Sequence record: LR756500.1
Direction: 5' to 3' (one strand)
Length of the DNA: 64,000 bases
The position numbers and the translations under genes were made by a program. Within the stretch, counting starts at the first letter, position 1; each line of letters starts with the position of its first letter. Below the pieces are notes generated by a model, which was not told the DNA's origin, made no database searches, and saw nothing but the letters and a program-made list of their open reading frames with translations. Positions 4,070 to 62,753 of the stretch are shown piece by piece.

Positions 4070-4448
4070 AATTTTTTATTAATTACTTTTTTATTATATT
4101 TACTTAATATTTATTTTTTTATTCTTTCATATTTTTGGGGTTCATATTTTGTAATGGGTAACTAGCCAAGAAGTTACCCATTATTTTTTTATTACTTTAT
4201 AATACAAAAATCAATTATTGATTTTTGATTCATTTAATTAACTAATTAAATCTTTTAGATATTATTAATATCAATTGGCGTATTATATATTGTTGAAGTT
4301 TAATNNNNNNNNNNNNNNNNNNNNNNTATTACCTTTAAAGGTGTATAAAAGTTTGTAATTTTATTATATATTAATTTTACTTTATTAACTATTTTTATCT
4401 TTTAATATTTGTTATTATATTTATACTATAATTAAAATAATATAAACA

Positions 4449-11049: not shown

Positions 11050-11064
11050 CCACCCTACAAACTT

Positions 11065-11095
11065 AAACGGGAATTCAATCAAAATTCCCGTTTTT
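11065..11095 (+). terminator. intrinsic terminator
   Basis: aaacgggaatt...aattcccgttttt. Confidence 0.75.
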
Positions 11096-11220
11096 AAAGG
11101 CCCACCCACGACCCTTACATGCATCATTTACCAACCTCTTTCATCCGACGGATTATCATGAATACCGGCCTATAGGAATCAAATATTTTTCGTGTCATGA
11201 TCACGACCTGTTGTTAAATG

Positions 11221-11310
11221 GGCCTTCACTAACTTGAGACGTCGGGCTAGATCGGATTATTATATAATTCAATATGATATCATTTTAATATCATTATAAT
11301 AAGTAAAATG
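11221..11310. other. candidate replication origin (C-rich to G-rich skew switch with an AT-rich palindrome)
   Basis: ttattata (11257-64)/tataataa (11295-302) flank the perfect palindrome atgatatcat (11274-83); skew flips here. Confidence 0.4.
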
Positions 11311-11410
11311 TAAATGAATAAGGTTAGATGATGTTAATATAAATGTGTTATTGATATGGGTATAGAGTAAAAACGATCATTATAGATTTAAATTTGAATG
11401 GATAGATAGA

Positions 11411-11634
11411 GGCGGACCGGTTTGGGAGACCAGAAGATAAGAGATAATTCTTTATATAGAAGAAGATTGTTATTTATATTGTTGTATAGAGAATGTTTTT
11501 TATATATAGGTAGTATTTTGTAAGAGTGTATAGATGTTTGTAATTATATAGAGTGTTGTTATAAAGAAGGTTGTTTATGAGACTATAGATATTATATAGA
11601 GTGTTATGTAGTATTTGTTTGGCGGACCGGTTTG
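11411..11634 (+). repeat. 14-bp direct repeat ggcggaccggtttg (11411, 11621), each followed by a gaccaga motif
   Basis: Exact match, GC-rich in an AT-rich non-coding context. Confidence 0.85.
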
Positions 11635-11705
11635 ATTTTTGTGTACGGGACCAGATTAGAGTTGTTGGATGTATTTTGGGATATATAATAAAAAATAGAG
11701 TTTAN

Positions 11706-12197
11706 NNNNNNNNNNNNNNNNNNNNNNNNNNGTTTGTTTATGAGACAGATTATGATTATTTTTATAATTCACAGGATAATGATGAAGATATTGATAATTC
11801 AAAAGAGGATTTGTTAGATGATATGAAAAATTGGGATGATAAAGAGATACGAAAACTTAGTATAGAGGCATATTATAAAAGTTTTAAAGTGTATAGTTTA
11901 AATCAAGATGTTGATAGATTGTTAAAGAATTTTGTGGATGTATATTCGATGTTTATAAGAAGATGTTTTAAAGAAGAGAGAAAGATTGATTATAATAGAG
12001 ATATAAATTTTTTTAGAAAGTATAAAGATAGATTAAATGATATGATTAAAAAATCATTAGAAAAAGATATTAATAAGTTGTTTGCAGATAAAAAATATGA
12101 TATAGGAGTTTATTATAGAAAGTTTGTTAATAAAAAGTTATATAATAAATATGAGCATTTATTTAATGCTGATGATTTTGGAATGTTAGATAATTAA
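11706..12197 (+). CDS. NADDFG-tag family protein 1 (start inferred inside the N-run)
   Basis: Ends HLFNADDFGMLDN; FVYE at 11733 lies exactly nine codons after 11706, as in sibling genes. Confidence 0.7.
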   Translation, partial: XXXXXXXXXFVYETDYDYFYNSQDNDEDIDNSKEDLLDDMKNWDDKEIRKLSIEAYYKSFKVYSLNQDVDRLLKNFVDVYSMFIRRCFKEERKIDYNRDINFFRKYKDRLNDMIKKSLEKDINKLFADKKYDIGVYYRKFVNKKLYNKYEHLFNADDFGMLDN

Positions 12198-12211
12198 AAT
12201 AAAGAAGTGAN

Positions 12212-12634
12212 NNNNNNNNNNNNNNNNNNNNNNNNNNGTTTATATTAGATGAAGGAGTTTTTCAGAAGTTGAAAGACTGGGGTAGTTCATTGTTTAGAAG
12301 TACAGTTGGAAAGATGTATATAAAGTATAATAATCCTAAGAATATGATTGAGAAGAAGTTTACTAATGCTGCTGATGTTATATTAGATGGTGTAGATGAA
12401 TTTTTAAATAGTAATGGAGAGTTATTATGGGATAAGTTGTTAAAAGAGAAGAAAGAAGAGGTTAGAAATTTTATAGCTACGTATAATGCATCATCTAGAT
12501 CTCATAAGACTAATGAACAAGAGTTATATGATTTTATTAAGTATGCTCTTAATAAGAAAGAAGATGATGGAGATGATGGTAAGTCTTATAACTCATATAG
12601 TAGTAAATCATATAAAACTAAATTTAGAAGATGA
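12212..12634 (+). CDS. family-associated protein with inferred N-terminal motif and no C-terminal tag
   Basis: In-frame FILDEGVFQKLKDWG begins at 12239, nine codons after 12212 inside the 27-nt N-run; gtttatattaga matches the 13446 gene. Confidence 0.65.
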   Translation, partial: XXXXXXXXXFILDEGVFQKLKDWGSSLFRSTVGKMYIKYNNPKNMIEKKFTNAADVILDGVDEFLNSNGELLWDKLLKEKKEEVRNFIATYNASSRSHKTNEQELYDFIKYALNKKEDDGDDGKSYNSYSSKSYKTKFRR

Positions 12635-13428
12635 AATTTATATTAGAGTATAAAGTTTTTGTTAATGATAATATTTTAAGAGATAAGATTATTGATATTT
12701 TTTCCAAAGTTGGAAAAGAAAGATATAATATTAAAGATATTAAAAAGATTGTAGATAGTAAAAGTTTTAAAACATTAGATGATAAAGTAAAAGAGATATT
12801 AAATAGGTATTTTAATATTTATAATAGAGATAAAAATTTAGAATTTAAATATATTATAGAAGAATTGAATAGGTATTTTCCTAAAGCTTTAGATAGACAA
12901 ATGGATAATATAATAGATGATATAGGAGATGATATAGATGTACGTTTTTTTAATATAGAAGATGAAGAAGATATAAAATTTTTAGCTAAAGATATTGAAA
13001 AATATATTAATAATTTTTTACTATTTATTTATATCGATAATAATGATATATGGGTAGAGAGATTAAATTTATTAAAGGTTAATGATAAATTTGTAGATTA
13101 TTTTATTGATTATGTATTAGAAGAATTAGATATGAAACATATTGATAAGATTAATTCAGAAAATTATAAAGCATTAATAAAAATATTTAATATTGATAAT
13201 GGTTATATTAAATTTAAAAGTGAAGGAATATTTTATAAAAAGATTGCAGAAAATGTTTTTAGGTATATTGTAAAGAGTATTGATAAAAAATTAATTGAAA
13301 ATTTAGATGAAATTATTAAGCAAAATAATTTTATAGTTCCATATTTTAAAGATGTATTAACTCCAGAGCAGATTAAAAAGTATGATCATATTTTGAATGC
13401 AGACGACTTTGGATTTTTAGATAATTAA
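12631..13428 (+). CDS. NADDFG-tag family protein 2
   Basis: Starts MKFILEYKVFVND, ends HILNADDFGFLDN. Confidence 0.85.
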   Translation: MKFILEYKVFVNDNILRDKIIDIFSKVGKERYNIKDIKKIVDSKSFKTLDDKVKEILNRYFNIYNRDKNLEFKYIIEELNRYFPKALDRQMDNIIDDIGDDIDVRFFNIEDEEDIKFLAKDIEKYINNFLLFIYIDNNDIWVERLNLLKVNDKFVDYFIDYVLEELDMKHIDKINSENYKALIKIFNIDNGYIKFKSEGIFYKKIAENVFRYIVKSIDKKLIENLDEIIKQNNFIVPYFKDVLTPEQIKKYDHILNADDFGFLDN

Positions 13429-13445
13429 AAAAAAAAAAGAATATA

Positions 13446-14282
13446 ATGAAATATATAAAGGAGTATGAAGAGTTTATATTAGAAGCTAATGAGGCTAAAT
13501 TAGNNNNNNNNNNNNNNNNNNNNNNNNNNNNNNNNNNNNNNNNNNNNNNNNNNNNNNNNNNNNCAAGTTTAGAGTTAATTGATAATGAGTTAACTTCGTT
13601 ACCTAAAGAGATAGGAAATTTAACGAAATTAACAAGTTTATATTTAAGTAGTAATAATTTGACTTCGTTGCCTAAAGAGATAGGAAATTTAACGAAATTA
13701 ACAAGTTTATATTTAGGTGTTAATCAAAAATTAAATGAGTTGCCTAAAGAGATAGGTAATTTAACTAAATTAATAACTTTACATTTAAATGATAATAAGT
13801 TGACTGAATTGCCAAAAGAGATAGGAAATTTAACGAAATTAACAAGTTTATATTTATATAGTAATAGNNNNNNNNNNNNNNNNNNNNNNNNNGGTAATTT
13901 AACAAAATTGACAAATTTAAATTTAGGTAAAAATATGTTGAGTAAGTTGCCAAAGGAGATAGGTAATTTAACAAAATTGACAAATTTAAATTTAGGTAAA
14001 AATATGTTGACTGAATTGCCAAAAGAGATAGGAAATTTAACGAAATTAACAAGTTTATATTTAAGTAGTAATAATTTGACTTCGTTGCCTATTGAATTGA
14101 TTAAATGGAAATTTTTTGATGAATTATATTTAAGTAAATTAAGTGATGAATTATGGTTAAAATTATTTAATACAGATAAGTTTAAGGCGATAAAGCATAA
14201 AGATTTTCCAAAGAGGTTAAGAGGGAATAAAGAGGTAGAGGATATAGCGAATGCGGATGATTTTGGATTTTTCGATAATTAA
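13446..14282 (+). CDS. leucine-rich-repeat protein, NADDFG-tag family
   Basis: 23-aa repeats [23 protein letters not shown]; starts [13 protein letters not shown], ends [13 protein letters not shown]; contains two N-runs. Confidence 0.9.
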
Positions 14283-14297
14283 AAATAAATTAATAAA

Positions 14298-15077
14298 ATG
14301 AAGTACATAAAGGGATATGAAGATTTTATAACAAATAGTTTAAATGAAGCTAAAATTAAAGATGGAGAGAATGGATTAGAGTTTATAGCTAGATTAACTA
14401 AAATTACAATTGATAATTTAATTAATAGAGATATTTTAAATTTAGGTGTTTATGCATTAACTGAATTACCAAAAGAGATAGGAAATTTAACAAAATTAAC
14501 TATGCTACGTTTATATAGTAATAAGTTGACTGAGTTGCCANNNNNNNNNNNNNNNNNNNNNNNCTTAACATATTTAGATTTAACTAACAATAAGTTGACT
14601 GAGTTGCCAAAAGAGATAGAAAATTTAACTAACTTAACATATTTATCCTTAGGTAGTAATCCGTTGAAGGAATTTCCAAAGGAAATAGGAAATTTAAAGA
14701 ATTTAGAAGAATTAAATTTAAATAGAAATCAGTTGGTTGAGTTGCCAAAGGAAATAGGAAATTTAACAAAATTAACAATTTTAAATTTAGGTAGTAATAA
14801 GTTTAAGGAGTGGCCAAAGGAGATAGATAAATTAAAAAATTTAACACATTTATATTTACATGATAATGAGTTGGAATCAATACCTGATGAGTTGGTTGAG
14901 CGGAAATGGTTTTATGAGTTAGATTTAAATAGATTGAGTGATGAAGTATGGTTAAGGTTGTTTAAGATGAATGGAATTAAGGTGATAAAGCATAAAGATT
15001 TTCCAAAAAAATTAAGGAGTAGTAAAGAAATTAATGATATAGCGAATGCGGACGATTTTGGATTTTTCGATAATTAG
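14298..15077 (+). CDS. leucine-rich-repeat protein, NADDFG-tag family
   Basis: [11 protein letters not shown] repeats; starts MKYIKGYEDF, ends [13 protein letters not shown]. Confidence 0.9.
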   Translation: MKYIKGYEDFITNSLNEAKIKDGENGLEFIARLTKITIDNLINRDILNLGVYALTELPKEIGNLTKLTMLRLYSNKLTELPXXXXXXXXLTYLDLTNNKLTELPKEIENLTNLTYLSLGSNPLKEFPKEIGNLKNLEELNLNRNQLVELPKEIGNLTKLTILNLGSNKFKEWPKEIDKLKNLTHLYLHDNELESIPDELVERKWFYELDLNRLSDEVWLRLFKMNGIKVIKHKDFPKKLRSSKEINDIANADDFGFFDN

Positions 15078-15898
15078 ATTAATCCAAAGTCATCAGCATT
15101 TATTAGATGGTTGTATTTGTTGTTTAAATATGAGTTAGTAATTACTATTTTTTTATATCTATTAAAATTAGATATATTTTTATTTAATATTTGATCAACT
15201 TTATTTATAATAATATCTTTAAAATAATCTTTAAATTTATTGTAATATGATTTATTAATATTTGAATAAGATAGTTTAAATTCAATAAGTTTATTATTTA
15301 AAAAATATAAATAGTTTATATTATCGTGGATATTTCCCCATTCTTCATTTATACGTTTAAGTATAAAGTTACAAAAAGAATCAAATGTTTCTTTATAGAA
15401 TTTTAAAAGTTCATTTTCTTCTAATGATATATCTTTTTTAAAATATTCTTCTATAAAAAAATCACAACTAAAAAGTTTTCGTTCTTGTTTATTATCGAAT
15501 TTTTTATTTATATCTGTTTTGAAATATTTAATTTTATTTTCAATTATTAAATCTTTATATTTATCGTATAGATTTGGAAAATATTTATTTAAATTTTCTT
15601 CTATTGCTGAAAAGTGTTTAATATTAAAGCTATAATCTTGATTTTTATGTATATAGTTATCTAAAACTAAATCTAATCTTTCTTCTAATGTTAAATGAGT
15701 ATATTCAATAATGATATCAAAAGGATAATCTTTTTCTTCAAATTCACTAGAAGATATATCTTTAAGAATTTCTATAGCAGCACTTGTTCGTATAGGATCT
15801 TTTTCTTTAGATTTTTTAAAATATGATTCTTCATTAATTTTAAATCTATTATTATAGACTTCGTTTAAAAATTCTGTATATTTAAAAATATATTTCAT
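15074..15898 (-). CDS. NADDFG-tag family protein
   Basis: Starts MKYIFKYTEFLNE, ends HLINADDFGLI. Confidence 0.85.
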   Translation of the reverse strand: MKYIFKYTEFLNEVYNNRFKINEESYFKKSKEKDPIRTSAAIEILKDISSSEFEEKDYPFDIIIEYTHLTLEERLDLVLDNYIHKNQDYSFNIKHFSAIEENLNKYFPNLYDKYKDLIIENKIKYFKTDINKKFDNKQERKLFSCDFFIEEYFKKDISLEENELLKFYKETFDSFCNFILKRINEEWGNIHDNINYLYFLNNKLIEFKLSYSNINKSYYNKFKDYFKDIIINKVDQILNKNISNFNRYKKIVITNSYLNNKYNHLINADDFGLI

Positions 15899-15906
15899 AT
15901 TATAAT

Positions 15907-17016
15907 TTAGTTATCAAAGAATCCAAATTCATCTGCATTATGTAATTCTTCAAATTCTTTTTTAAGTGTATCTGATAGTTTATTAATAGCTTTGAGTTTT
16001 CCTATAATAGTAAGATCTTTTTTAATTCTATTTCTCCAGTAGTCGTCAATTGCAGATTGAGTTAAATTAGGATTTTTTGAATAATTAAAATTTTTAGGTT
16101 CTACATTTAACGGAGCTCCTATTAAATTTTTTAAATAATTATTACTAACATCAAATTTATTTTTATTAGGTTCTAGAAATTCTATATTGAATCCGAAGTC
16201 TATTGATACCAAAAAGCTATTTGATAAATCTAGATTACTATCGAAAAAATATGTATTTGTAGATTTATTTATTTGTGATGGATTTAATTTTAATTTAACT
16301 ATTTCTAATTGTATTTTTTCTAAATTATTTATAATATTTTTAGCATCTTTACTATTACCAATAATTTTAAATTTAGGTAATGCTCCATTTAAAAATGATT
16401 TAAAAGAAATTGTAGAAGTATATAAATTATTTTTTGAATCTACATTATAAATAAGAGCATTTTCTATATTTAAAGTTGAACCTGGATATACACACCTTTC
16501 ATATTCATATGTTCTAAATGTATAGAAAGTTCCGGTTCTTTTTACATTTAATGTAAATTCTTGTATATTTTTTTCAATTGTTTCAGGATCTATTTTTGTT
16601 ATTCTTTTAGGAAAATCTATACCAAAAAATCTCCATTGAGCTTCTACTTCTTTTTGTACTAATTTTTTTATACTGTTTTTATAAGTATATCCATCATAAA
16701 ATTCTGTATCTCTTTGTATAAATACTACAAAATCTAAAGGATAAAATACGAAACAATCCCATTCTTTAGGATCATAATAATTAAAAAGATCTTTCGTTGA
16801 AAAATATTTACCATGTATTTGTGTTGAGATATTAATAAATTTATTTCGTGTCCAGTAATCAAACGCATCATTATTTAGAATTTTTACGATTATAAAGTCT
16901 TTTTCACTATTAATAATAGAACCATTTTTAATCGATTGACTAGAAATTTTTTGAAAATTTGCATATAAGTCTATATCACTTCTTTTAAATTCTTCGTATA
17001 ACGGTAAATATTTCAT
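15907..17016 (-). CDS. NADEFG-tag family protein with a short C-terminal LRR-like segment
   Basis: Starts MKYLPLYEEF; LDLSNS...FDVSNNYLKNLIGAP; ends LHNADEFGFFDN. Confidence 0.85.
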   Translation of the reverse strand: MKYLPLYEEFKRSDIDLYANFQKISSQSIKNGSIINSEKDFIIVKILNNDAFDYWTRNKFINISTQIHGKYFSTKDLFNYYDPKEWDCFVFYPLDFVVFIQRDTEFYDGYTYKNSIKKLVQKEVEAQWRFFGIDFPKRITKIDPETIEKNIQEFTLNVKRTGTFYTFRTYEYERCVYPGSTLNIENALIYNVDSKNNLYTSTISFKSFLNGALPKFKIIGNSKDAKNIINNLEKIQLEIVKLKLNPSQINKSTNTYFFDSNLDLSNSFLVSIDFGFNIEFLEPNKNKFDVSNNYLKNLIGAPLNVEPKNFNYSKNPNLTQSAIDDYWRNRIKKDLTIIGKLKAINKLSDTLKKEFEELHNADEFGFFDN

Positions 17017-17094
17017 ATAGTATTATTTAATTTAAATATATATCCAATAATAGAATTAAAATATATTTTAATTAGCTAACAAGATCTTTAAATA

Positions 17095-17113: not shown

Positions 17114-17713
17114 ATGATTAATATTGAAAAATTAAAAGGACAAATTCCAGATATTGTTTATGATCAAATTGAATTAACTGCATCTAAATTTAATATTACC
17201 ACAAATTTAAGACTTGCACATTTTTTGGCACAGTGTTCTCACGAAAGTGGAGATTTTAGATTAGTTAAAGAAAATTTAAATTATTCTGCATCTGGTTTAT
17301 TAAAGATATTTCCAAAATATTTTACAACAGAAACTGCACCTTTATATGAAAGACAATCTCAAAAAATTGCTAATAAAGTATATGCTAATAGAATGAGTAA
17401 TGGAGATGAAAAATCTGGAGATGGATTTAAATTTTGTGGTAAAGGATATATCCAACTTACAGGTAAAGAAAATTATACAAAATTTTCTCAGTTTATTGGT
17501 GAAGATTGTGTAGCAAATTCAGATTTAGTTGCAACTAAATATCCGTTAGCTTCTGCTGCATTTTTCTTTGATAAAAATGGTTTATGGAGTATATGCGATA
17601 AAGGATCAACTATTGAAGTTGTTACATCTGTAACAAAAAGAGTTAATGGTGGAACTATTGGATTAGACGATAGAATAAATAAATTTAATAAATTTTGGAA
17701 CTTATTAAAATAA
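17114..17713 (+). CDS. GH19 (chitinase-like) endolysin
   Basis: AHFLAQCSHESG, ENLNYS, YANRMSNGD, GKGYIQLTGKENY motifs. Confidence 0.9.
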   Translation: MINIEKLKGQIPDIVYDQIELTASKFNITTNLRLAHFLAQCSHESGDFRLVKENLNYSASGLLKIFPKYFTTETAPLYERQSQKIANKVYANRMSNGDEKSGDGFKFCGKGYIQLTGKENYTKFSQFIGEDCVANSDLVATKYPLASAAFFFDKNGLWSICDKGSTIEVVTSVTKRVNGGTIGLDDRINKFNKFWNLLK

Positions 17714-17722
17714 AATTAAAAT

Positions 17723-18082
17723 ATGTTTAAAGAAAAATTATTATCATTACTTAAGCAATCTTCTAAGAGTCCATGGGGAGGATTTTCATCAACTAGAATA
17801 AGTGCTTATTTTTTATTGATTGCTATATTATTATTTTCTGTTGTATTTTTAGGAATAGAAGTATATGCTGCAGTTGTTTCACTAAAATTAACGGGAACAT
17901 ATGTTATATCAAATGAAGCAATAATTATTTTTGCATCATTATTAACTCATCATTTAACATTATTAGGCATAAATAAATCTAGTGAAACTAAACAATTAAA
18001 AAATAATAATACTAAACCAGAAGAAATAAATTCTGCGCAAAAGGCAGATGAAGTTAAAAAAGAAAATGAAGTAATTACTTAA
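17723..18082 (+). CDS. holin-like membrane protein
   Basis: Two hydrophobic segments and a charged C-tail, directly after the endolysin. Confidence 0.5.
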   Translation: MFKEKLLSLLKQSSKSPWGGFSSTRISAYFLLIAILLFSVVFLGIEVYAAVVSLKLTGTYVISNEAIIIFASLLTHHLTLLGINKSSETKQLKNNNTKPEEINSAQKADEVKKENEVIT

Positions 18083-18106: not shown

Positions 18107-18340
18107 TTAATCTTTATTTTCGTTGTTTCTTAATACTATTTCTGCATATTTTTCAAACACTAAATCTCCTATTTCTTTTTTATCATCTCGTGTTAATTTA
18201 TGATATAAATTATCATCTGTAAAAAATTCTATTTTTACTACAGGATCATCGTATGTTAAATCAGTTACATAATAAACTTTTTCATTAACTGACATTGAAC
18301 CATTTAATTCAATGGTTATTATTTCTTTATTTGTTTCCAT
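18107..18340 (-). CDS. hypothetical protein
   Basis: 77-aa ORF overlapping the upstream sigma gene stop. Confidence 0.65.
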   Translation of the reverse strand: METNKEIITIELNGSMSVNEKVYYVTDLTYDDPVVKIEFFTDDNLYHKLTRDDKKEIGDLVFEKYAEIVLRNNENKD

Positions 18341-18872
18341 CTATTATTAAATTATAAAATATTTTGTTATATTTAAATAAAATTTGTTTTACTATAGGTA
18401 ATGTGTAATTAAGTTCTTCAACAATCTCTTGATATTTTTTATATTCAATATATCTTTTACTTAAAATTTTTTTATCTCTTTCAGATTTAATAGAATAAAT
18501 AAAATTTGTTATTTTATTACATAATTCTTTAAATATTAAATTATTATCTGTTTTATAATCAGATTTAATATCTAAATACTCAATATCGGATAATACTTCA
18601 TATTTTCTTTTAATAGATTGTTTTTTCTTAAAATAATCGCTGCATTCATTAACTGTTATAGTACAAATCCAATTAGAAAATTTTTGATTAATATCATATG
18701 TATGTATTTTAGAAAAAACTTTAATAAAAACATTTTGAATTATTTCATTAATGTCTTCAATATTTTTAATTTTTGCTGATGCAATTTTTTTAACATAAGC
18801 ATAATATTTATCATATAATTCTTTTTGAGAATTATTATTATTATTTAATACACCTAATATTATAGATTCCAT
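18327..18872 (-). CDS. ECF-type RNA polymerase sigma factor
   Basis: Region 2 QKELYDKY...EIIQNVFIKVFSKIHTYD...FSNWICTITVNECSDY plus a C-terminal HTH (YQEIVEELN). Confidence 0.8.
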   Translation of the reverse strand: MESIILGVLNNNNNSQKELYDKYYAYVKKIASAKIKNIEDINEIIQNVFIKVFSKIHTYDINQKFSNWICTITVNECSDYFKKKQSIKRKYEVLSDIEYLDIKSDYKTDNNLIFKELCNKITNFIYSIKSERDKKILSKRYIEYKKYQEIVEELNYTLPIVKQILFKYNKIFYNLIIDGNK

Positions 18873-18928
18873 TTTTAAGCTTTAAAAAAGATCTATTGCT
18901 AGATCTTTTTTTTAATGTTTAAATTAAA

Positions 18929-19708
18929 TTATATTTTAAAGTCTGATAATATATTATCAATATTATCTTTAGTTACATTAGTATTTTTTAAATCACTAAA
19001 CTTTTTCCTTGAAGTTATTTCATAAAAATGTTTTAGTTCATCTAATGTTTCTATAACACATACTCCCATTTCAACATCATGAAATTTAAGTTTTATGCTT
19101 ACATTAAGATATTTACCAGAATTATCTTTTAATAAATTCTTTTTAATAAAGAATTTTCTATCAGCAATACCATCCCATTCTAAATTAGTAAGACCTTCAT
19201 TAATTATTTCTTCTATTGAAATTGTTCCCATTGATAAACGATCATCAGTATTTTTATCGAAAATTAGTGATTGATCTTCTTCAAAAATTACAACTGTAAT
19301 ATCCTCGCCAATCATTTCTTTCTCTATAATAGAAGAAATTAATTTCCAATCGCCACCTGCTAAACCTGCTCCTATTAAAGGTATCCCAAATTTTTTGCCT
19401 GTAAATAATAATTTGATTTCTTTAAATGCACTTTTAATAGCATCATAATCAACATTATTTTTACCTTTAAAATGAAATTGAGTATAGGCATTAATTATTA
19501 TAGGAGTAGTATTAGTTGTATATGAAATTCCTCCTAATTTTTGTTGTGGAGTTCTTGGATCATTTTTATCAACATTAAAAGCTTCTGGAAAAATTACTTT
19601 AATTTGTTTAGCAATGCCTGCTCCCATAGTACTAAAGCAATTACAACCATGCACTATAATATCAAATTCAGTTGCTTGTCTAATTAAATTTCCGGTAATC
19701 TCTTTCAT
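18929..19708 (-). CDS. macrodomain (ADP-ribose binding/hydrolase) protein with C-terminal extension
   Basis: GNL...IVHGCNC...MGAGIAKQI and PLIGAGLAGGDW motifs. Confidence 0.85.
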   Translation of the reverse strand: MKEITGNLIRQATEFDIIVHGCNCFSTMGAGIAKQIKVIFPEAFNVDKNDPRTPQQKLGGISYTTNTTPIIINAYTQFHFKGKNNVDYDAIKSAFKEIKLLFTGKKFGIPLIGAGLAGGDWKLISSIIEKEMIGEDITVVIFEEDQSLIFDKNTDDRLSMGTISIEEIINEGLTNLEWDGIADRKFFIKKNLLKDNSGKYLNVSIKLKFHDVEMGVCVIETLDELKHFYEITSRKKFSDLKNTNVTKDNIDNILSDFKI

Positions 19709-20358: not shown

Positions 20359-20904
20359 TTAATATAAAAATGTGTTTGTATAAATTGTTTGTATTGCTTT
20401 TATTCCGTTATTGTTTATTTTTCTTGTTCCTATACCTGCAAACTTTTTAGTTAAAATAGGTTCTTTACATTCTCTGAATTCTTTAATTTCATAAACATAT
20501 TTCATCCAAATATTTTTATTTTGTTCAAAAAGATATATAGGTTTATTAACTATTGTTGCCATCGCAACAGCCCATCCAGTTCCTCCATTGACTATATTAT
20601 CTATTAATTCTCCTATTGCAAAAATAGTATCTGCATTTTTAACTTGAAACCAATTTCTCCTTAATAAATTATTTACATAAATATTATTAGAAGGATATTT
20701 TCTTTTTAAAAGTCGTGAAGCTTTTCGATAATATGAATCGGATTCCTCTAATTCTTTTTCTGTTAATATTATAAAATGTTTAGAATCAGTATTATGTGAT
20801 ATAAAAGAAAAAGCTATGGTGCTTACTCCATATTTTTCACCATAGGTTTCCCATATAGTATCAGCACCTTTAGCTCCTCCTGAATAATTAATATAATCAT
20901 TCAT
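20359..20904 (-). CDS. SLOG-like nucleotide-binding protein
   Basis: SGGAKGAD, RRNWFQV, GGTGWAV and FAGIGTR motifs. Confidence 0.55.
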   Translation of the reverse strand: MNDYINYSGGAKGADTIWETYGEKYGVSTIAFSFISHNTDSKHFIILTEKELEESDSYYRKASRLLKRKYPSNNIYVNNLLRRNWFQVKNADTIFAIGELIDNIVNGGTGWAVAMATIVNKPIYLFEQNKNIWMKYVYEIKEFRECKEPILTKKFAGIGTRKINNNGIKAIQTIYTNTFLY

Positions 20905-23387
20905 TATTGATCCTTTTTAGATTCAAGTTGTTCAACTTTTACATCAAAGAATTTAGTAATTGTTTTTTCAAGTGGAGTTCCTTTTACTGTTTCTAATAAA
21001 CCTTCTATTCCACCTTTTTGAAATATTCCATGTAAACCACCGCCTTGAGCTTTAAGATTTTCAGCTAATATTTTATTATTTTCTAAATTACCTATTGATA
21101 CTAAAGCATCTATTAATCCAGGTTGAATTGATTGATTTTTAGCAGTAACTTCTTTAATTGATAAATCAGTAAATTTAGAAGCTAAATAAAGTTTTTGTTC
21201 ATCATCGGCTTTTCTTCTTGATAATTGAGTAGCATGTATTGAATCATGTTTAGCTTGTTGTTCAATTTCATAATTTAAATCAACTAATTTAGTATTAGCT
21301 TTTTCTGCACTTCTTTTTAAATTAATTTCTGCAACTAATTTTTGAGTTTCATCTACTTCATTCATTTCGTTTCTTTTTAATTTTTCATAATTAACAACGA
21401 AATTAAGATCTCTTTCTTTTTGTTTAATTTTTAAATTATTCTCTACTGCATCGTGTTGAGAAGTTTCTAATAAATTAGCTATATCTTTATCACCAATTGT
21501 AACATTAAGTACTTCAACATCGTAAATTCTCATTCCATTTTCATCGAATACTTTTCCTACTCTGCCTTTTTCTTTTTCAGATACACCTAGAATAATATCT
21601 CTAATCATATCTGTTGAGTTATCGTTAAAGTATTCAATAGTTTGTTTTTTAACGGCATTTCTAATTACAGATCTTAAATGTTGCGTTAAAAGTTTAACAT
21701 AATTAGAAACATTAAACCATTTTTCAGATTTACCTTCAAAATTAACTCTATAAGATAATCTAATATTAACATTTACAAAATCTTTTGTAATTGCTTCAAC
21801 AATATCTGAAACAATATTATTTTCTGTTTGAAGATAAACAGTTTCAAATAATAAATGATCTGTTTTTGGTTTATTAGTAGATAAAGCTAAACTTTCTAAA
21901 GTTTCATCATATTCTAACATTACAACTTTAGGTCCAACTATTACTTCTCTTTCACCAGTCTTTTTAACCTTTTGAATAGCAAATCCTGGCCATACATTAA
22001 GAGTTACAGCTCCATCATATTTATCATTAATTTCAACAGTACGAGGTTTTGTAAACTCATTATTTCGTTGCATTTTTTCACCTACTAAACCTTGAAATGA
22101 TCCTCTGCTTTTTAATCTTCTATCATAATTTGCAAATTGTTCTTCCTCAATAGCAAAATCAGCAGATGCACTAAATAGCATATCACCCATTACTGAAGCA
22201 TCTCTAAGTTCATTTGATTTCTTTCTTAGTTCTCTATTGTAATTTAATGCTTCTGTATTACTTGGAAACCATAAATTAACTTGTTTATCAGAAAGAATTC
22301 GTTTAACGATAACTTCTGATCTAGGATCCGGAAGAAGCATTTTATTTCCTTTAACTAATTTAATGCTTCCATCATTTTTATCTAAAATGTATCTTCCTGA
22401 ACCTTCAGGAACAGCTACTGCATAATGAATTTCTCTATCACCGTATTTTATTAATGATAATTCAGGTCTTGGAAAAAATATTCTTTGTTCTTTTCCAGTA
22501 ATAAATAATTCTTCACCGGCTATTCTTTGTTTACCATCTTTACCTTCTTCTTGATAATCTTGAATAACTTTAACATAAATACCCATGTTATCATTAAGTT
22601 CAACTGCTTTGAAAATTCTATTGCCTTTTTCATCAATAAAAGTTTCAGTAGGTTTTGGAAATACTACAGCTGGACCTCTTTCATATCTTTTATCTCCATT
22701 TTGATCTAAAAGAATGCAATATTCCAATCTTTCTAATGTTACAGCATTTCTTGCATAACTGCCTCTTTCATCTTTTAATACTTCAATACCAGTAGGAGGT
22801 ATATAAAATGAAACATCAGTTCCTTTAATTAAAAGAATATTTCCAGTAAACAATTCTTCTTCCTTTATAACATTAGGTTTCTTTGTCTTTTTAGAATCAT
22901 TATCATCTTTAACATCCGCTGCTTTCAATACAGTATTTTTGATATTAGCTTTTGCAGCTACTTCATTATATACTCTTACTAAAAGATATTCATTCCATTT
23001 AAGTTGATGACCTTGTACTTCTTCTGCAATTTGACCTGGCCATAATGCAAATGTTGTAGGGCCAGGTATATTGATTTTATTACCAATATCTAATTTAACA
23101 CCTTCTTGTTTTCCTTTTGATGGATGAGAATTGTTTTCTGTCTCTGGATTTTCAAGAATAATGTATTGTCCTTCAGTTGCAACTACCCAAGTTTGAATAG
23201 ATGATTGTACTTGTACAGCCATAAACTGTCTCGTTCTTTTATCATAGATAACAGGTTTATCTGTATCCCCTGGACTAATTTTAAAAGGCCCATTTACTAT
23301 TTGAACAGTTCCTGAAGAACCATCTTGAATATAAGCGTATGTTCCTTGTGATAAAACTAAATCTCCTAATCGCTGAATTTCTGCCAT
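20904..23387 (-). CDS. major vault protein-like protein
   Basis: Repeated beta units with GP..F/L.P..E motifs, an MVP-like shoulder (TKDFVNVNIRLSYRVNF...LRSVIRNAV...NSTDMIRDIILG...GMRIYDVEVLNV) and a long C-terminal coiled coil. Confidence 0.75.
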   Translation of the reverse strand: MAEIQRLGDLVLSQGTYAYIQDGSSGTVQIVNGPFKISPGDTDKPVIYDKRTRQFMAVQVQSSIQTWVVATEGQYIILENPETENNSHPSKGKQEGVKLDIGNKINIPGPTTFALWPGQIAEEVQGHQLKWNEYLLVRVYNEVAAKANIKNTVLKAADVKDDNDSKKTKKPNVIKEEELFTGNILLIKGTDVSFYIPPTGIEVLKDERGSYARNAVTLERLEYCILLDQNGDKRYERGPAVVFPKPTETFIDEKGNRIFKAVELNDNMGIYVKVIQDYQEEGKDGKQRIAGEELFITGKEQRIFFPRPELSLIKYGDREIHYAVAVPEGSGRYILDKNDGSIKLVKGNKMLLPDPRSEVIVKRILSDKQVNLWFPSNTEALNYNRELRKKSNELRDASVMGDMLFSASADFAIEEEQFANYDRRLKSRGSFQGLVGEKMQRNNEFTKPRTVEINDKYDGAVTLNVWPGFAIQKVKKTGEREVIVGPKVVMLEYDETLESLALSTNKPKTDHLLFETVYLQTENNIVSDIVEAITKDFVNVNIRLSYRVNFEGKSEKWFNVSNYVKLLTQHLRSVIRNAVKKQTIEYFNDNSTDMIRDIILGVSEKEKGRVGKVFDENGMRIYDVEVLNVTIGDKDIANLLETSQHDAVENNLKIKQKERDLNFVVNYEKLKRNEMNEVDETQKLVAEINLKRSAEKANTKLVDLNYEIEQQAKHDSIHATQLSRRKADDEQKLYLASKFTDLSIKEVTAKNQSIQPGLIDALVSIGNLENNKILAENLKAQGGGLHGIFQKGGIEGLLETVKGTPLEKTITKFFDVKVEQLESKKDQ

Positions 23388-24500: not shown

Positions 24501-25607
24501 TTAAAAATTATTTGTAATATAAGTTACATTATGAGCTTCAATATGTTTAGGTATATCAATACCTCTAAAAAGTTTGTTAATTACTTTTTCAGGGACCATT
24601 TCTTCTCTAGATAAATTTTGATCTAAAACTTTATTGAATGTAGTATTAATATAAATGATATTAATATAAGCATTATATAATGTAAATAAAGATATTAAAC
24701 TTTCTCGTGTTAATTTAGAAGTATTTGTTGCATTCCATATAAATGATTTACCTTCTCTTAAATATCCTTTAGCAATTTCTTTAGCTGCTTGTATTACATG
24801 ACCTTGTGGCTTATCAGGCTTTATTTTTAATTTAATTCTTATTTCATCTAAACTTATAACAGGTATATCTTTTAAATGAGTTTTAATATAAGTATCTTTA
24901 CCACTTCCAGGTAAGCCACTCATTAAATAAACTTTAGATTTAGTATCATTAAATGCTTCATCTGTATGATAATAAGTTTTTTTAACAATATAATTAAATT
25001 TAGTATATTCATTTTTAAATTGATATGAATTATAATAACATCCTAATTCTTCTGCATATAATCCAAACCAATTAATCTTTTCAATCATACTTTCAGTATC
25101 TGATGCAATTCTTCCCAAAGTATCATATATAGCAAGTTTATGTAATAAAAACAAATTACAATCTAAACTCATTTTAATTATATCATACTCTTGATCTTTA
25201 TTTGTTTTATCTATAATCCAAGGTGGTTCACCGTGATAAAGAATAAGATTTGCTATTTGTAATTTATCTTCAAATGTTATTATATTCTTCTGTTCAATTT
25301 TATCTAAAAGTTCTAGCGCAATATGATAACCTATTCTACTATGTCCGTGACTTCTAATATGTCCATTTTCTTCTTTACTACAATATGGTTTTCCGATATC
25401 ATGTAAAGTTATTGCATATCTTAATATTTTTTGTTGTTGTTCTGTAAATAATATAGATTCTTTTTCAAATTCATCTAAAACCATTCTGACATGCGTTAAT
25501 ACATCACCCTCCGCATGATATTCTTTATCTTGTTCGCAATGTTTCATATCATGAAAGTATGGTATAATTTCAGGTAATATTTTTTGTATATAAGTTAAAA
25601 AATCCAT
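24501..25607 (-). CDS. HD-domain plus P-loop kinase (polynucleotide kinase-like, RNA end healing)
   Basis: YHAEGDVLTH...LHDIGK and GLPGSGKDT...SLDEIR...WNATN. Confidence 0.85.
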   Translation of the reverse strand: MDFLTYIQKILPEIIPYFHDMKHCEQDKEYHAEGDVLTHVRMVLDEFEKESILFTEQQQKILRYAITLHDIGKPYCSKEENGHIRSHGHSRIGYHIALELLDKIEQKNIITFEDKLQIANLILYHGEPPWIIDKTNKDQEYDIIKMSLDCNLFLLHKLAIYDTLGRIASDTESMIEKINWFGLYAEELGCYYNSYQFKNEYTKFNYIVKKTYYHTDEAFNDTKSKVYLMSGLPGSGKDTYIKTHLKDIPVISLDEIRIKLKIKPDKPQGHVIQAAKEIAKGYLREGKSFIWNATNTSKLTRESLISLFTLYNAYINIIYINTTFNKVLDQNLSREEMVPEKVINKLFRGIDIPKHIEAHNVTYITNNF

Positions 25608-61415: not shown

Positions 61416-61428
61416 ATGTTTATATTTG

Positions 61429-61500
61429 AGCGAGATATCAGGATTGAACTGACGGCCCTTGGTTTGGAAAACCAATGCTCTACCACTGAGCTAATCTCGC
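61429..61500 (-). tRNA. trnG: tRNA-Gly (TCC), no encoded CCA
   Basis: Cloverleaf: GCGAGAT/ATCTCGC acceptor, TTGGT-TTTCCAA-ACCAA anticodon arm, TTCAATC T-loop. Confidence 0.9.
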
Positions 61501-61507
61501 ATTTTAA

Positions 61508-62089
61508 TTAACTAATTAAAACATCATATAATAAATTAATTTGATATTCTAAATCTTCTTTTAATCCATTATTATAAATAACATAATCAGAATTTTTAAC
61601 TCTATAAATATCTGTAATTTGTTGTTTATTAATTCTTTTAATAACATCTTCTCTTGTACAATTATTTCTCTTTATTACTCTTTCTATTCTTTTTTCTATT
61701 GGTGAAACAACAGATATCATTTTATTATAAGAATCTTCATCATTTTTTTCGAATATAATTGCATTTTCGATAATTACAAATGGCTTTTTTTGTATTTTAC
61801 ACCAATAATCTATTTCTAATTCTACATAAGGATGAATTATTCTTTCAATTTTATAAAGTTTATCGTTATCATTAAAAATAATAGAAGCTACTTTTTCTCT
61901 ATTTAAACTTTTATCTGGGAAATAAACATCACCTAATAAATCAATAACTTTTTCTTTAATAGCATCATTTAAATATGCATCTCTTGCAATTTGATCTGCA
62001 TTTAATACTGGAACACCTAATTTTGAAAATAAAAAAGCTACAGTACTTTTACCTGCACCTATACCACCTGTTAAACCTATTTTTGCCAT
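61508..62089 (-). CDS. coaE: dephospho-CoA kinase
   Basis: IGLTGGIGAGKS, LNADQIAR, IIHPYV and RVIKRN; ATG at 62089. Confidence 0.92.
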   Translation of the reverse strand: MAKIGLTGGIGAGKSTVAFLFSKLGVPVLNADQIARDAYLNDAIKEKVIDLLGDVYFPDKSLNREKVASIIFNDNDKLYKIERIIHPYVELEIDYWCKIQKKPFVIIENAIIFEKNDEDSYNKMISVVSPIEKRIERVIKRNNCTREDVIKRINKQQITDIYRVKNSDYVIYNNGLKEDLEYQINLLYDVLIS

Positions 62090-62111
62090 ATTAAATCTAT
62101 TTAAAAATTTG

Positions 62112-62185
62112 AGCCTCCAGTAGGATTCGAACCCACGGCCCTCTCGGTACAAACGAGATGCTCCGACCAACTGAGCTATAGAGGC
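62112..62185 (-). tRNA. trnT: tRNA-Thr (TGT), no encoded CCA
   Basis: GCCTCTA/TGGAGGC acceptor, TCTCG-TTTGTAC-CGAGA anticodon arm, GGTTCGAATCC. Confidence 0.92.
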
Positions 62186-62187
62186 AT

Positions 62188-62225
62188 TGGAGCGGGCTCG
62201 GCGATTCAACCGAGGATCATCCCGC
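62188..62225 (-). ncRNA. tRNA-Gly-like minihelix (acceptor and T-arm only, with CCA)
   Basis: GCGGGATGATCCTCGGTTGAATCGCCGAGCCCGCTCCA. Confidence 0.55.
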
Positions 62226-62237
62226 ATATTTTATTAG

Positions 62238-62309
62238 AGCGAGATATCAGAATTAAACTGACGACCTGAACATTGGCAATGTTCCGCTCTATCACTGAGC
62301 TAATCTCGC
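62238..62309 (-). tRNA. trnG: tRNA-Gly (GCC) with atypical T-loop TTTAATT, no CCA
   Basis: GCGAGAT/ATCTCGC acceptor, GAACA-TTGCCAA-TGTTC anticodon arm. Confidence 0.85.
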
Positions 62310-62447
62310 ATTGTGTAGTTTTTGTAATATCCCCTGAACTACTAACAGTGCTAACCTATGATTTAGAGAACAGTTGCGCATTATTAAGAGGCAGTTCATA
62401 TCTTCGATCCATTATAGTGCACCATAAGAGGGCTAATTTCTAAATTG

Positions 62448-62519
62448 TTGTCTCTCACTGAGTCGAACAGTGATTTTTAGATCCAAATTCTAATATAATA
62501 ACCATTATATCAAGAGACA
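62448..62519 (-). tRNA. trnQ: tRNA-Gln (TTG), AT-rich, no CCA
   Basis: TGTCTCT/AGAGACA acceptor, TTAGA-ATTTGGA-TCTAA anticodon arm, CACTG-TTCGACT-CAGTG T-arm. Confidence 0.8.
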
Positions 62520-62529
62520 ATTTAAAATG

Positions 62530-62580
62530 CGTAATAAAATAAAACAACGTTTCAACATGTTTCAATTTTATTTTATTACG
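62530..62580. repeat. 15-bp perfect inverted repeat between tRNAs
   Basis: cgtaataaaataaaa (62530-44) / ttttattttattacg (62566-80). Confidence 0.85.
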
Positions 62581-62673
62581 ACTATATAACAATAAGCAGC
62601 TGACTACTAATTTCAGCATGTCTCCGTTTAAATTATCACTAACCCTAGGTGTAGAGAACTTATTATTACATTG

Positions 62674-62753
62674 TGGAATCGGAGGGATTCGAACCCCCAA
62701 GTCTTTCGAGCCTGATCTACAGTCAGGTAGGCCACCAATTGCCCAACAATTCC
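62674..62753 (-). tRNA. trnY: tRNA-Tyr (GTA), no CCA
   Basis: GGAATTG/CGATTCC acceptor, CCTGA-CTGTAGA-TCAGG anticodon arm, long variable arm, GGTTCGAATCC. Confidence 0.92.

Follow-up and report, generated by a model that had tools for sequence, protein, structure and literature searches.

The first 64 kb of sequence record LR756500.1, which derives from an uncultured huge phage and is referred to here as the window, contains at positions 11,706 to 17,016 a cluster of seven genes whose products are joined by their ends rather than by their middles. All five readable starts conform to the pattern MK[YF][IL]xxYxxF (the N-tag), as an earlier note on this DNA had described, and six of the proteins end in NAD[DE]FG[FLM][FLI](DN) (the C-tag), each of the six endings described in that note having been located. 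The C-tag is the last part of a C-terminal module of ~30 residues (the C-module). The middles are indeed unrelated outside one pair of leucine-rich repeat (LRR) proteins, no other similarity being found among them (blastp E<1e-3; phmmer E<0.05). Comparison with phage T4 makes it highly probable that the N-tag belongs to a capsid-targeting propeptide of the T4 type that operates by a known mechanism. The leader is of a known kind that is used here on an unusually large scale, and the C-module is an undescribed addition, for which we hypothesize the role of a second address. Taken as a whole, the explanation that we put forward, namely a cleavable T4-type leader combined with a docking tail on the mature cargo, appears moderately probable.

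The window corresponds to positions 262,729-326,728 of a 429-kb copy of the genome in IMG/VR (the INPHARED record is 462 kb); coordinates prefixed G000:C1 are genome-wide, and all others are those of the window. The earlier note had proposed that the full genome and its relatives be scanned for both tags. Genome-wide, 24 open reading frames (ORFs) start with the N-tag, amounting to about 4% of the genes, and a few variants occur, the carriers numbering about 25-29 in all; the same kind of leader also occurs in related phages. A profile of the last 30 residues detects 15 copies of the C-module, every one of them C-terminal. Given the composition of about 600 genes, 0.007 N-tags and 0.0006 C-tags would be expected by chance, so that the 24 and 15 observed are far beyond chance. 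Moreover, the two tags go together: in the 600-gene set the N-tag is present in 23 proteins, the C-tag in 14 and both in 10 (Fisher p = 7e-13).

The N-terminal leader and the head genes

In T4, the capsid-targeting sequence MKTYQEFIAE is removed by one cut of the prohead protease (PMC8442874). This sequence is all that the diverse internal proteins of T-even phages have in common (PMC3012670, PMC5694885), and by itself it packages foreign proteins (PMC3012670, PMC5694885, PMC8442874). The leader of the present proteins aligns with it as Y-x-E-F-I/L-x-E and comprises the same motif plus three residues, MK-xxx-x-Y-x-E/D-F-[LIV]-x-E. Furthermore, the head module of the phage is of the T4 type, with a Gp23-like capsid protein (PF07068, 116 bits), a portal and a protease-scaffold protein. 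The last of these, 632 residues long, contains an S77/phrog_207 prohead protease in its N-terminal ~200 residues (PF03420 44.8 bits; phrog_207 1e-40) followed by a scaffold-like region, and the same fusion is annotated in Tenacibaculum phage PTm1.

The capsid proteins of the clade keep the sequence ..LINE followed by A/S at their N-terminus, after a variable 3-6 residues, and this looks like the same type of protease site as the [LI]xE of the leader. Among the loci of related capsid genes (n=80, 56-75% identity), 42 ORFs in 38 loci begin with MK[RHT][LV]K[ST][YF][NE][QE]F[IV][AN]E, in many cases immediately downstream of the capsid gene; the leader is therefore old and clade-wide. Within the present genome, the Y and F of the N-tag are kept across switches between TAT and TAC and between TTT and TTC, which points to selection on the peptide. 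The capsid-targeting role that the earlier note had assigned to the N-tag is thus borne out by the S77 protease, the Gp23-like capsid, the alignment with T4, the site conserved in the clade and the leader in relatives, whereas packaging, cleavage and injection stay at the level of prediction.

The cleavage motif itself is common but not universal. [LIVF]xE occupies positions 11-13 in 18 of the 24 N-tags. In the cluster, where several N-tags had been reported to continue with [ILV]xE, this is so at those positions in two of the five readable ones (two to three with [LIVF]xE as the pattern); of the others, one has a shifted site (SLNE at residues 15-18), one has D for E and one has none.

A candidate promoter may connect the tagged genes with the head genes. 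Of 639 genes, 68 have the motif ATATATA[AT] within the 60 nucleotides (nt) upstream of them, in most cases at 10-25 nt from the ATG; these include the capsid, protease-scaffold and portal genes, with examples upstream of G000:C1 29174, 31120 and 32843 (-). Tagged genes are enriched in the motif (9/28, p = 0.001), which also stands at both outer ends of the cluster. It is a candidate late-type promoter, reminiscent of the TATAAATA of T4, and its presence at both groups of genes suggests that the tagged operons are co-expressed with the head genes.

The leader is borne by a varied set of proteins. A second large array (G000:C1:115457-120217) consists of seven or eight leader genes in a row, including an LRR protein with the C-module and a PNK-type 3'-phosphatase; the latter is part of the leader-only cargo, as are a DUF2201 metallopeptidase with a VWA domain and an ATP-grasp enzyme.

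The C-terminal module and its possible roles

The C-module begins with a loose basic stretch, [IL][KR]K..[FL]P..[LI][KR], continues with K-Y-E-H-L-x or E-D-I-A and closes with N-A-D-D-F-G-F-F-(D-N). Its F and G are nearly invariant, and its extreme end varies (DN, FL, LI, D, GFKK). According to the earlier note, confinement of the C-tag to recently duplicated genes with nucleotide-level identity would have spoken against a functional tag. We find the opposite: across the eight codons of the core, no two of the 11 canonical copies have the same DNA, the differences being synonymous and mostly at third positions, so that neither recent duplication nor gene conversion accounts for them. Judged from these coding sequences, selection acts on the C-tag as a peptide.

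Six of the carriers are LRR paralogues; the other nine show no detectable similarity to one another and are without a match among the Pfam and PHROG families. In their cores, the LRR carriers look like ordinary LRR proteins of cells, and none of the 120 best outside LRR homologues has either tag; it appears from these comparisons that captured domains were given end-pieces of the phage's own. In AF2 models the LRR solenoid reaches pLDDT >90, with residues 1-16 and the last ~35 below 50, and the orphan gene 6 product behaves alike; on these models, both tags look like exposed flexible linear motifs. Since no [LIV]xE site lies ahead of the tail, it should survive maturation.

Ten of the 15 C-module proteins have a canonical leader, one has its start under a run of masked letters (an N-run), one has a variant leader (MKKLEHVQLFEDF), one is a double-tagged gene interrupted by TAA, and two have no leader. 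One of these two is an LRR paralogue that starts just past the leader position. Since 2 of the 15 lack the N-tag, the two-tag architecture is not obligatory. The interrupted gene (G000:C1:124888-125493 (+)) has its leader at 124888, an in-frame TAA at 125038 and the end of the module at 125490, and could be a broken copy or yield two products.

The C-module is confined to this phage as far as our searches reach. Against 1.84 billion representative proteins, its profile matched only sequences with the lengths of this phage's own carriers, and it had no match in five large relatives (Lak-B5, PTm1 and three LR75xxxx huge phages). The profile found nothing similar in PDB, a literature search for the C-tag motif gave nothing relevant, and the full C-tag plus stop codon, used as a DNA pattern, had 0 matches in IMG/VR. 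The earlier note had recognized the two-tag architecture from no described system; the protein, PDB and literature searches agree in that the C-tag is undescribed. Given this distribution, the C-module is a lineage-specific invention, and conservation across species is not usable as evidence for it.

The shorter pattern NADDFGF, searched as DNA in IMG/VR, gave 28 matches, all internal or due to chance save one helicase tail. This tail belongs to an unrelated phage (IMGVR_UViG_3300027711_000021, locus L050, 3876-4430 (-)), in which a DnaB/gp41-like helicase ending in ..DDDGFNADDFGFDFI / ..DDNDDDGFNADDFGFDFI adjoins gp32-like, DHH and primase-like genes. The acidic-aromatic tail of this helicase, with its C-tag core, probably reflects convergence or chance.

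The mechanism that we propose treats the cluster as one of two large head-cargo arrays in a huge T4-like phage. The leader MK[YF][IL]xxYxxF[LIV]xE would load each protein onto the prohead scaffold core, the S77 prohead protease would remove the leader after the Glu, and the mature cargo would stay in the head and, by analogy with T4's internal proteins and with Alt, enter the next cell with the DNA. The mature protein would retain the C-module, which would serve as a flexible docking peptide with an acidic-aromatic end and tie the six LRR binders and the nine unrelated proteins to one common partner. Its action would follow maturation and take place in the course of ejection or else in the newly infected cell, where it would be the tail that connects an adaptor to a hub.

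We lean toward such a post-maturation role, rather than a second packaging signal, because in T4 nothing beyond the leader is needed for packaging, and two of the tail-bearing proteins are leaderless. A parallel comes from T4 itself, where Alt is packaged and its paralogues ModA and ModB are not. The combination of a variable binder with a constant tail is an adaptor architecture. Tentatively, we envisage a two-signal cargo system in which the N-terminus serves for loading into the prohead before it is cleaved away, and the C-terminus attaches the mature form to a single hub, which could serve ordered ejection or be a host machine that is given its targets by the LRR and orphan domains; for the internal proteins of phages, an arrangement of this kind has not been described.

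Several observations weigh against this proposal. Glu is absent from position 13 in 6 of the 24 N-tags, and the packaging, cleavage and expression of the leader proteins are predictions from the genes. The case for purifying selection of the C-module is built on the comparison of paralogues in one metagenomic genome, and the two leaderless carriers behind the lean to a post-maturation role could be decaying copies. Furthermore, no partner of the tail was found, PDB yielded no match, and the tails of the phage's own single-stranded DNA-binding protein (SSB) and helicase differ from the C-tag.

Alternatively, the C-module could be a second address within the virion, that is, a peptide that loads or anchors neutral or acidic cargo on the scaffold, the portal or the shell's inner face and determines where in the head this cargo sits or how many copies of it are present. 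Such a role would explain why the C-tag is tightly associated with a capsid-targeting leader, and for the leaderless carriers the tail could suffice to bring about packaging. It would also suit a short conserved C-terminal peptide that is predicted to be flexible, and it has general precedent in encapsulin cargo peptides and scaffold C-termini. The charge of the proteins is consistent with it as well: as a group, the C-tag proteins are neutral or acidic (median isoelectric point about 6), whereas most of the leader-only cargo is basic (about 8.9) and could lie on DNA without help. However, a second signal looks redundant when the T4 leader alone packages foreign proteins, and the tagged genes do not adjoin shell genes; we consider this role of the C-module unlikely.

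A tail without a function of its own, be it a family relic, a recombination handle for cassette swapping or a DNA-level element that serves the downstream gene, appears improbable. Its confinement to one genome and the grouping of the tagged genes in arrays might be so explained, and the internal-protein loci of T-even phages are known to be hyperplastic (PMC3012670). A DNA element in particular might be suspected where the next gene starts 15-35 nt past the C-tag, as in several cases, and in the TTTG that the coding DNA of the C-tag contains, like Bacteroidota promoters. Yet third positions vary while the amino acids are kept, and among the canonical cores, no two of which are alike in DNA, two break the TTTG. 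On either strand, the module never departs from the frame or from the terminal position, and this holds also for the convergent pair at 15045-15100, which has no downstream gene; the middles have diverged past detection whereas the ends have been kept.

That the C-module marks unpackaged or spent copies for degradation or turnover by a host or phage protease, the third option of the earlier note, is a conceivable but quite improbable use of a flexible, hydrophobic-acidic C-terminal tail that many unrelated proteins share. Recognition of the known C-terminal degrons starts at the free end, which varies here, and 30 conserved residues exceed the need of a degron; no link to a protease turned up, although no systematic search for one was made. 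As for the N-tag, a different N-terminal signal, such as one for export or for translation initiation in an AT-rich genome whose starts have A/T-rich first codons and no visible Shine-Dalgarno sequence, is very improbable for a tag without signal-peptide character that is present on so few of the genes, keeps its Y and F through codon changes and matches both the T4 targeting sequence and the site type of a protease that the phage encodes.

Three further readings of the C-tag were rejected. It is not a clamp-binding or SSB-tail mimic, because no replication protein of the phage ends in it, the tails of the phage's own gp32-like SSB and DnaB-like helicase being different, and the variation of its ends disposes of recognition of a free C-terminus of the PDZ type. 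A likeness to the tail of the ribosomal P-stalk (..GFGLFD), noticed by eye, had no support from searches and makes no biological sense for a bacterial host.

The cluster and its genomic setting

The features of the cluster are collected in Table 1. Some of its starts are hidden by N-runs, of which the window contains six, five in the cluster (27, 27, 60, 25 and 23 nt) and one outside it at 4305-4326. Outside the N-runs, the window and the genome copy are identical (0 mismatches) at a single, constant offset; the N-runs therefore have their true lengths and their flanks are continuous. Consistent with this, the LRR ORFs stay open in an unchanged frame across the runs at 13504-13563, 13868-13892 and 14541-14563.

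The two 27-nt runs were predicted in the earlier note to conceal an ATG exactly nine codons before FVYE (11706) and FILDE (12212). The geometry holds, with both runs in one register: they occupy 11705-11731 and 12211-12237, each opening 1 base ahead of the predicted start and closing 1 base short of a complete codon 9. Genes 1 and 2 thus become readable from codon 10, a TTT (F) at 11733 and 12239 that stands in the place of the invariant F of the N-tag and is followed by V-Y-E in gene 1 and I-L-D-E in gene 2, in the place of [LIV]xE. A public gene call of 163 amino acids with the C-module at its end fits a start at 11706, as far as its length goes.

Table 1. Genes and promoter-like motifs of the double-tagged cluster (window coordinates)
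Feature	Position	Strand	Remarks
ATATATAA, promoter-like ATATATA[AT] motif	11681..11688	+	~18 nt upstream of predicted start of gene 1
Gene 1, no known domain	11706..12197	+	Start under N-run 11705-11731; readable from 11733; C-tag NADDFGMLDN 12165-12194
Gene 2, no known domain	12212..12634	+	Start under N-run 12211-12237; readable from 12239; N-tag predicted from register only
Gene 3, 265 aa, orphan middle	12631..13428	+	N-tag MKFILEYKVFVND; C-tag NADDFGFLDN 13396-13425
Gene 4, 278 aa, LRR protein	13446..14282	+	N-tag then A; C-tag 14250-14279; LRR_8, LRR_14, phrog_6688
Gene 5, 259 aa, LRR paralogue	14298..15077	+	N-tag MKYIKGYEDF, SLNE|A at residues 15-18; C-tag 15045-15074
Gene 6, 274 aa	15074..15898	-	N-tag MKYIFKYTEFLNE|V; C-tag NADDFGLI 15077-15100(-); tail-to-tail with gene 5
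Gene 7, 369 aa, ORFan	15907..17016	-	N-tag MKYLPLYEEF; C-tag NADEFGFFDN 15910-15939(-)
ATATATAT, promoter-like motif	17036..17043	-	19 nt upstream of ATG of gene 7

The product of gene 2 lacks the C-tag and is basic at its C-terminus; the stop of the gene overlaps with the ATG that begins gene 3. The assignment of genes 4 and 5 to the LRR proteins is above the Pfam cut-offs, with up to 85 bits for LRR_8 and about 70 bits for LRR_14; two N-runs fall within the repeats of gene 4 and one inside gene 5. The AF2 model of the gene 6 product, made with no alignment, is all-helical and of low confidence. For gene 7, the sole database match in a homologue search was the protein itself, and a search of the ESM Atlas for look-alikes of two orphan proteins gave no usable lead.

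Upstream of the cluster, ~650 nt at 11050-11700 are free of ORFs and have a G+C content above that of the surroundings. This stretch contains two exact copies of GGCGGACCGGTTTG (at 11411 and 11621) and two of ATTATATAGAGTGTT; an Rfam search and a repeat scan detected no Rfam family and no tRNA in it. Directly after the cluster, at 17114-18082 (+), are genes for a GH19/phrog_181 endolysin (199 aa) and for a 119-aa protein that has a hydrophobic stretch and may be a holin or spanin. Close by, at 18327-19708 (-) and 24501-25607 (-), are genes for a sigma-70 region-2 protein (181 aa), a Macro-domain protein (259 aa) and an HD plus AAA_33 kinase-like protein (368 aa). The 827-aa product of 20904-23387 (-) combines a Major Vault Protein shoulder domain (95 bits) with a Vault_3 repeat and an SPFH/Band-7 domain, which is unusual for a phage. 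Five tRNA genes (Gly-TCC, Thr-TGT, Gly-GCC, Gln-TTG and Tyr-GTA) lie at 61428-62753 (-). Elsewhere in the genome, an untagged pair (G000:C1:120556-121761 (-) and 159814-160827 (-)) has another common ending (..GLNFEFDIIKL and ..GLNFEFLIF) and may represent a further terminal motif.

The G+C content of the window is 23-30%. The closest capsid proteins in deposited phage genomes, at about 30-38% identity, are those of Lak phages of Prevotella, of 634-735 kb LR75xxxx huge phages and of Tenacibaculum, Chryseobacterium and Flavobacterium phages. The nearest capsid gene found so far, with 75% identity, is on a 6-kb contig (L054). The 'Mahaphage' clade takes in the Lak phages and the largest genomes, and Bacteroidetes hosts have been predicted for it in a study that makes no mention of internal proteins, LRR proteins or capsid targeting (Al-Shayeb et al., PMC7162821). 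The present phage probably also infects Bacteroidota; the lack of visible Shine-Dalgarno sequences upstream of its starts fits such a host.

Significance and comparison with known systems

Huge phages possess hundreds of genes about whose functions little is known, and a readable address label helps to sort them. The leader assigns, without experiment, about 4-5% of the genes of this phage to a class that would be packaged and probably injected first, it can be used for mining related Bacteroidota phages, and it extends the capsid-targeting code of T4 far past the T-even phages. If the C-module is a docking tail, it would be a new portable peptide that joins captured cellular LRR binders and orphan proteins to one partner, and the identity of that partner would point to the targets of the effectors or to the order of cargo in a giant head. 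Moreover, both tags could become tools for loading proteins into capsids. The overall weight of these findings is limited by the single-genome distribution of the C-module and by the fact that no partner was found.

The closest known counterparts are IPI, IPII, IPIII and Alt of T4 and other T-even phages, which likewise have a short N-terminal leader on otherwise unrelated proteins and are encoded in variable arrays. As in the T4 proteins, whose leader is cut by the gp21 prohead protease, the Y-x-E-F-I/L-x-E core of the present leader ends in an [LI]xE protease site, and both genomes encode a T4-type protease and a Gp23-like capsid. N-terminal propeptides that serve for loading into the head and are cut after Glu by a T4-related prohead protease also occur in the ejection or inner-body proteins of the giant phages phiKZ and SPN3US (PMC5694885), although these are 80-130 residues long rather than a shared decapeptide, and no common C-terminal module has been described for them.

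From the T4 system the present one, as predicted from the genes, differs in several respects. Its leader is three residues longer, its carriers number about 25-29 rather than a handful, and its cargo includes LRR proteins and enzymes; in addition, about half of the carriers add the C-module, which is absent from the T4 proteins.

For the C-module, two kinds of terminal signal invite comparison. Encapsulin cargo-loading peptides, the encapsulation peptides of microcompartments and the C-termini of scaffold proteins are short terminal addresses to one receptor; the encapsulin peptides and scaffold C-termini bind shells of the HK97 fold. Like these, the C-module is a short flexible terminal peptide on unrelated cargo (15 copies, always terminal); however, its sequence is unrelated to theirs, the tagged genes do not lie beside a shell gene, and binding of the C-module to a shell is only putative. 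The SSB tip and the tails of phage helicases and SSBs, on the other hand, are acidic-aromatic C-terminal docking tails of hub-binding proteins, and the C-tag shares with them an acidic run followed by aromatics at a flexible C-terminus. In contrast to these tails, the extreme end of the C-tag varies, so that a free terminal aromatic is not the determinant, and its carriers are LRR and orphan proteins rather than components of the replisome.

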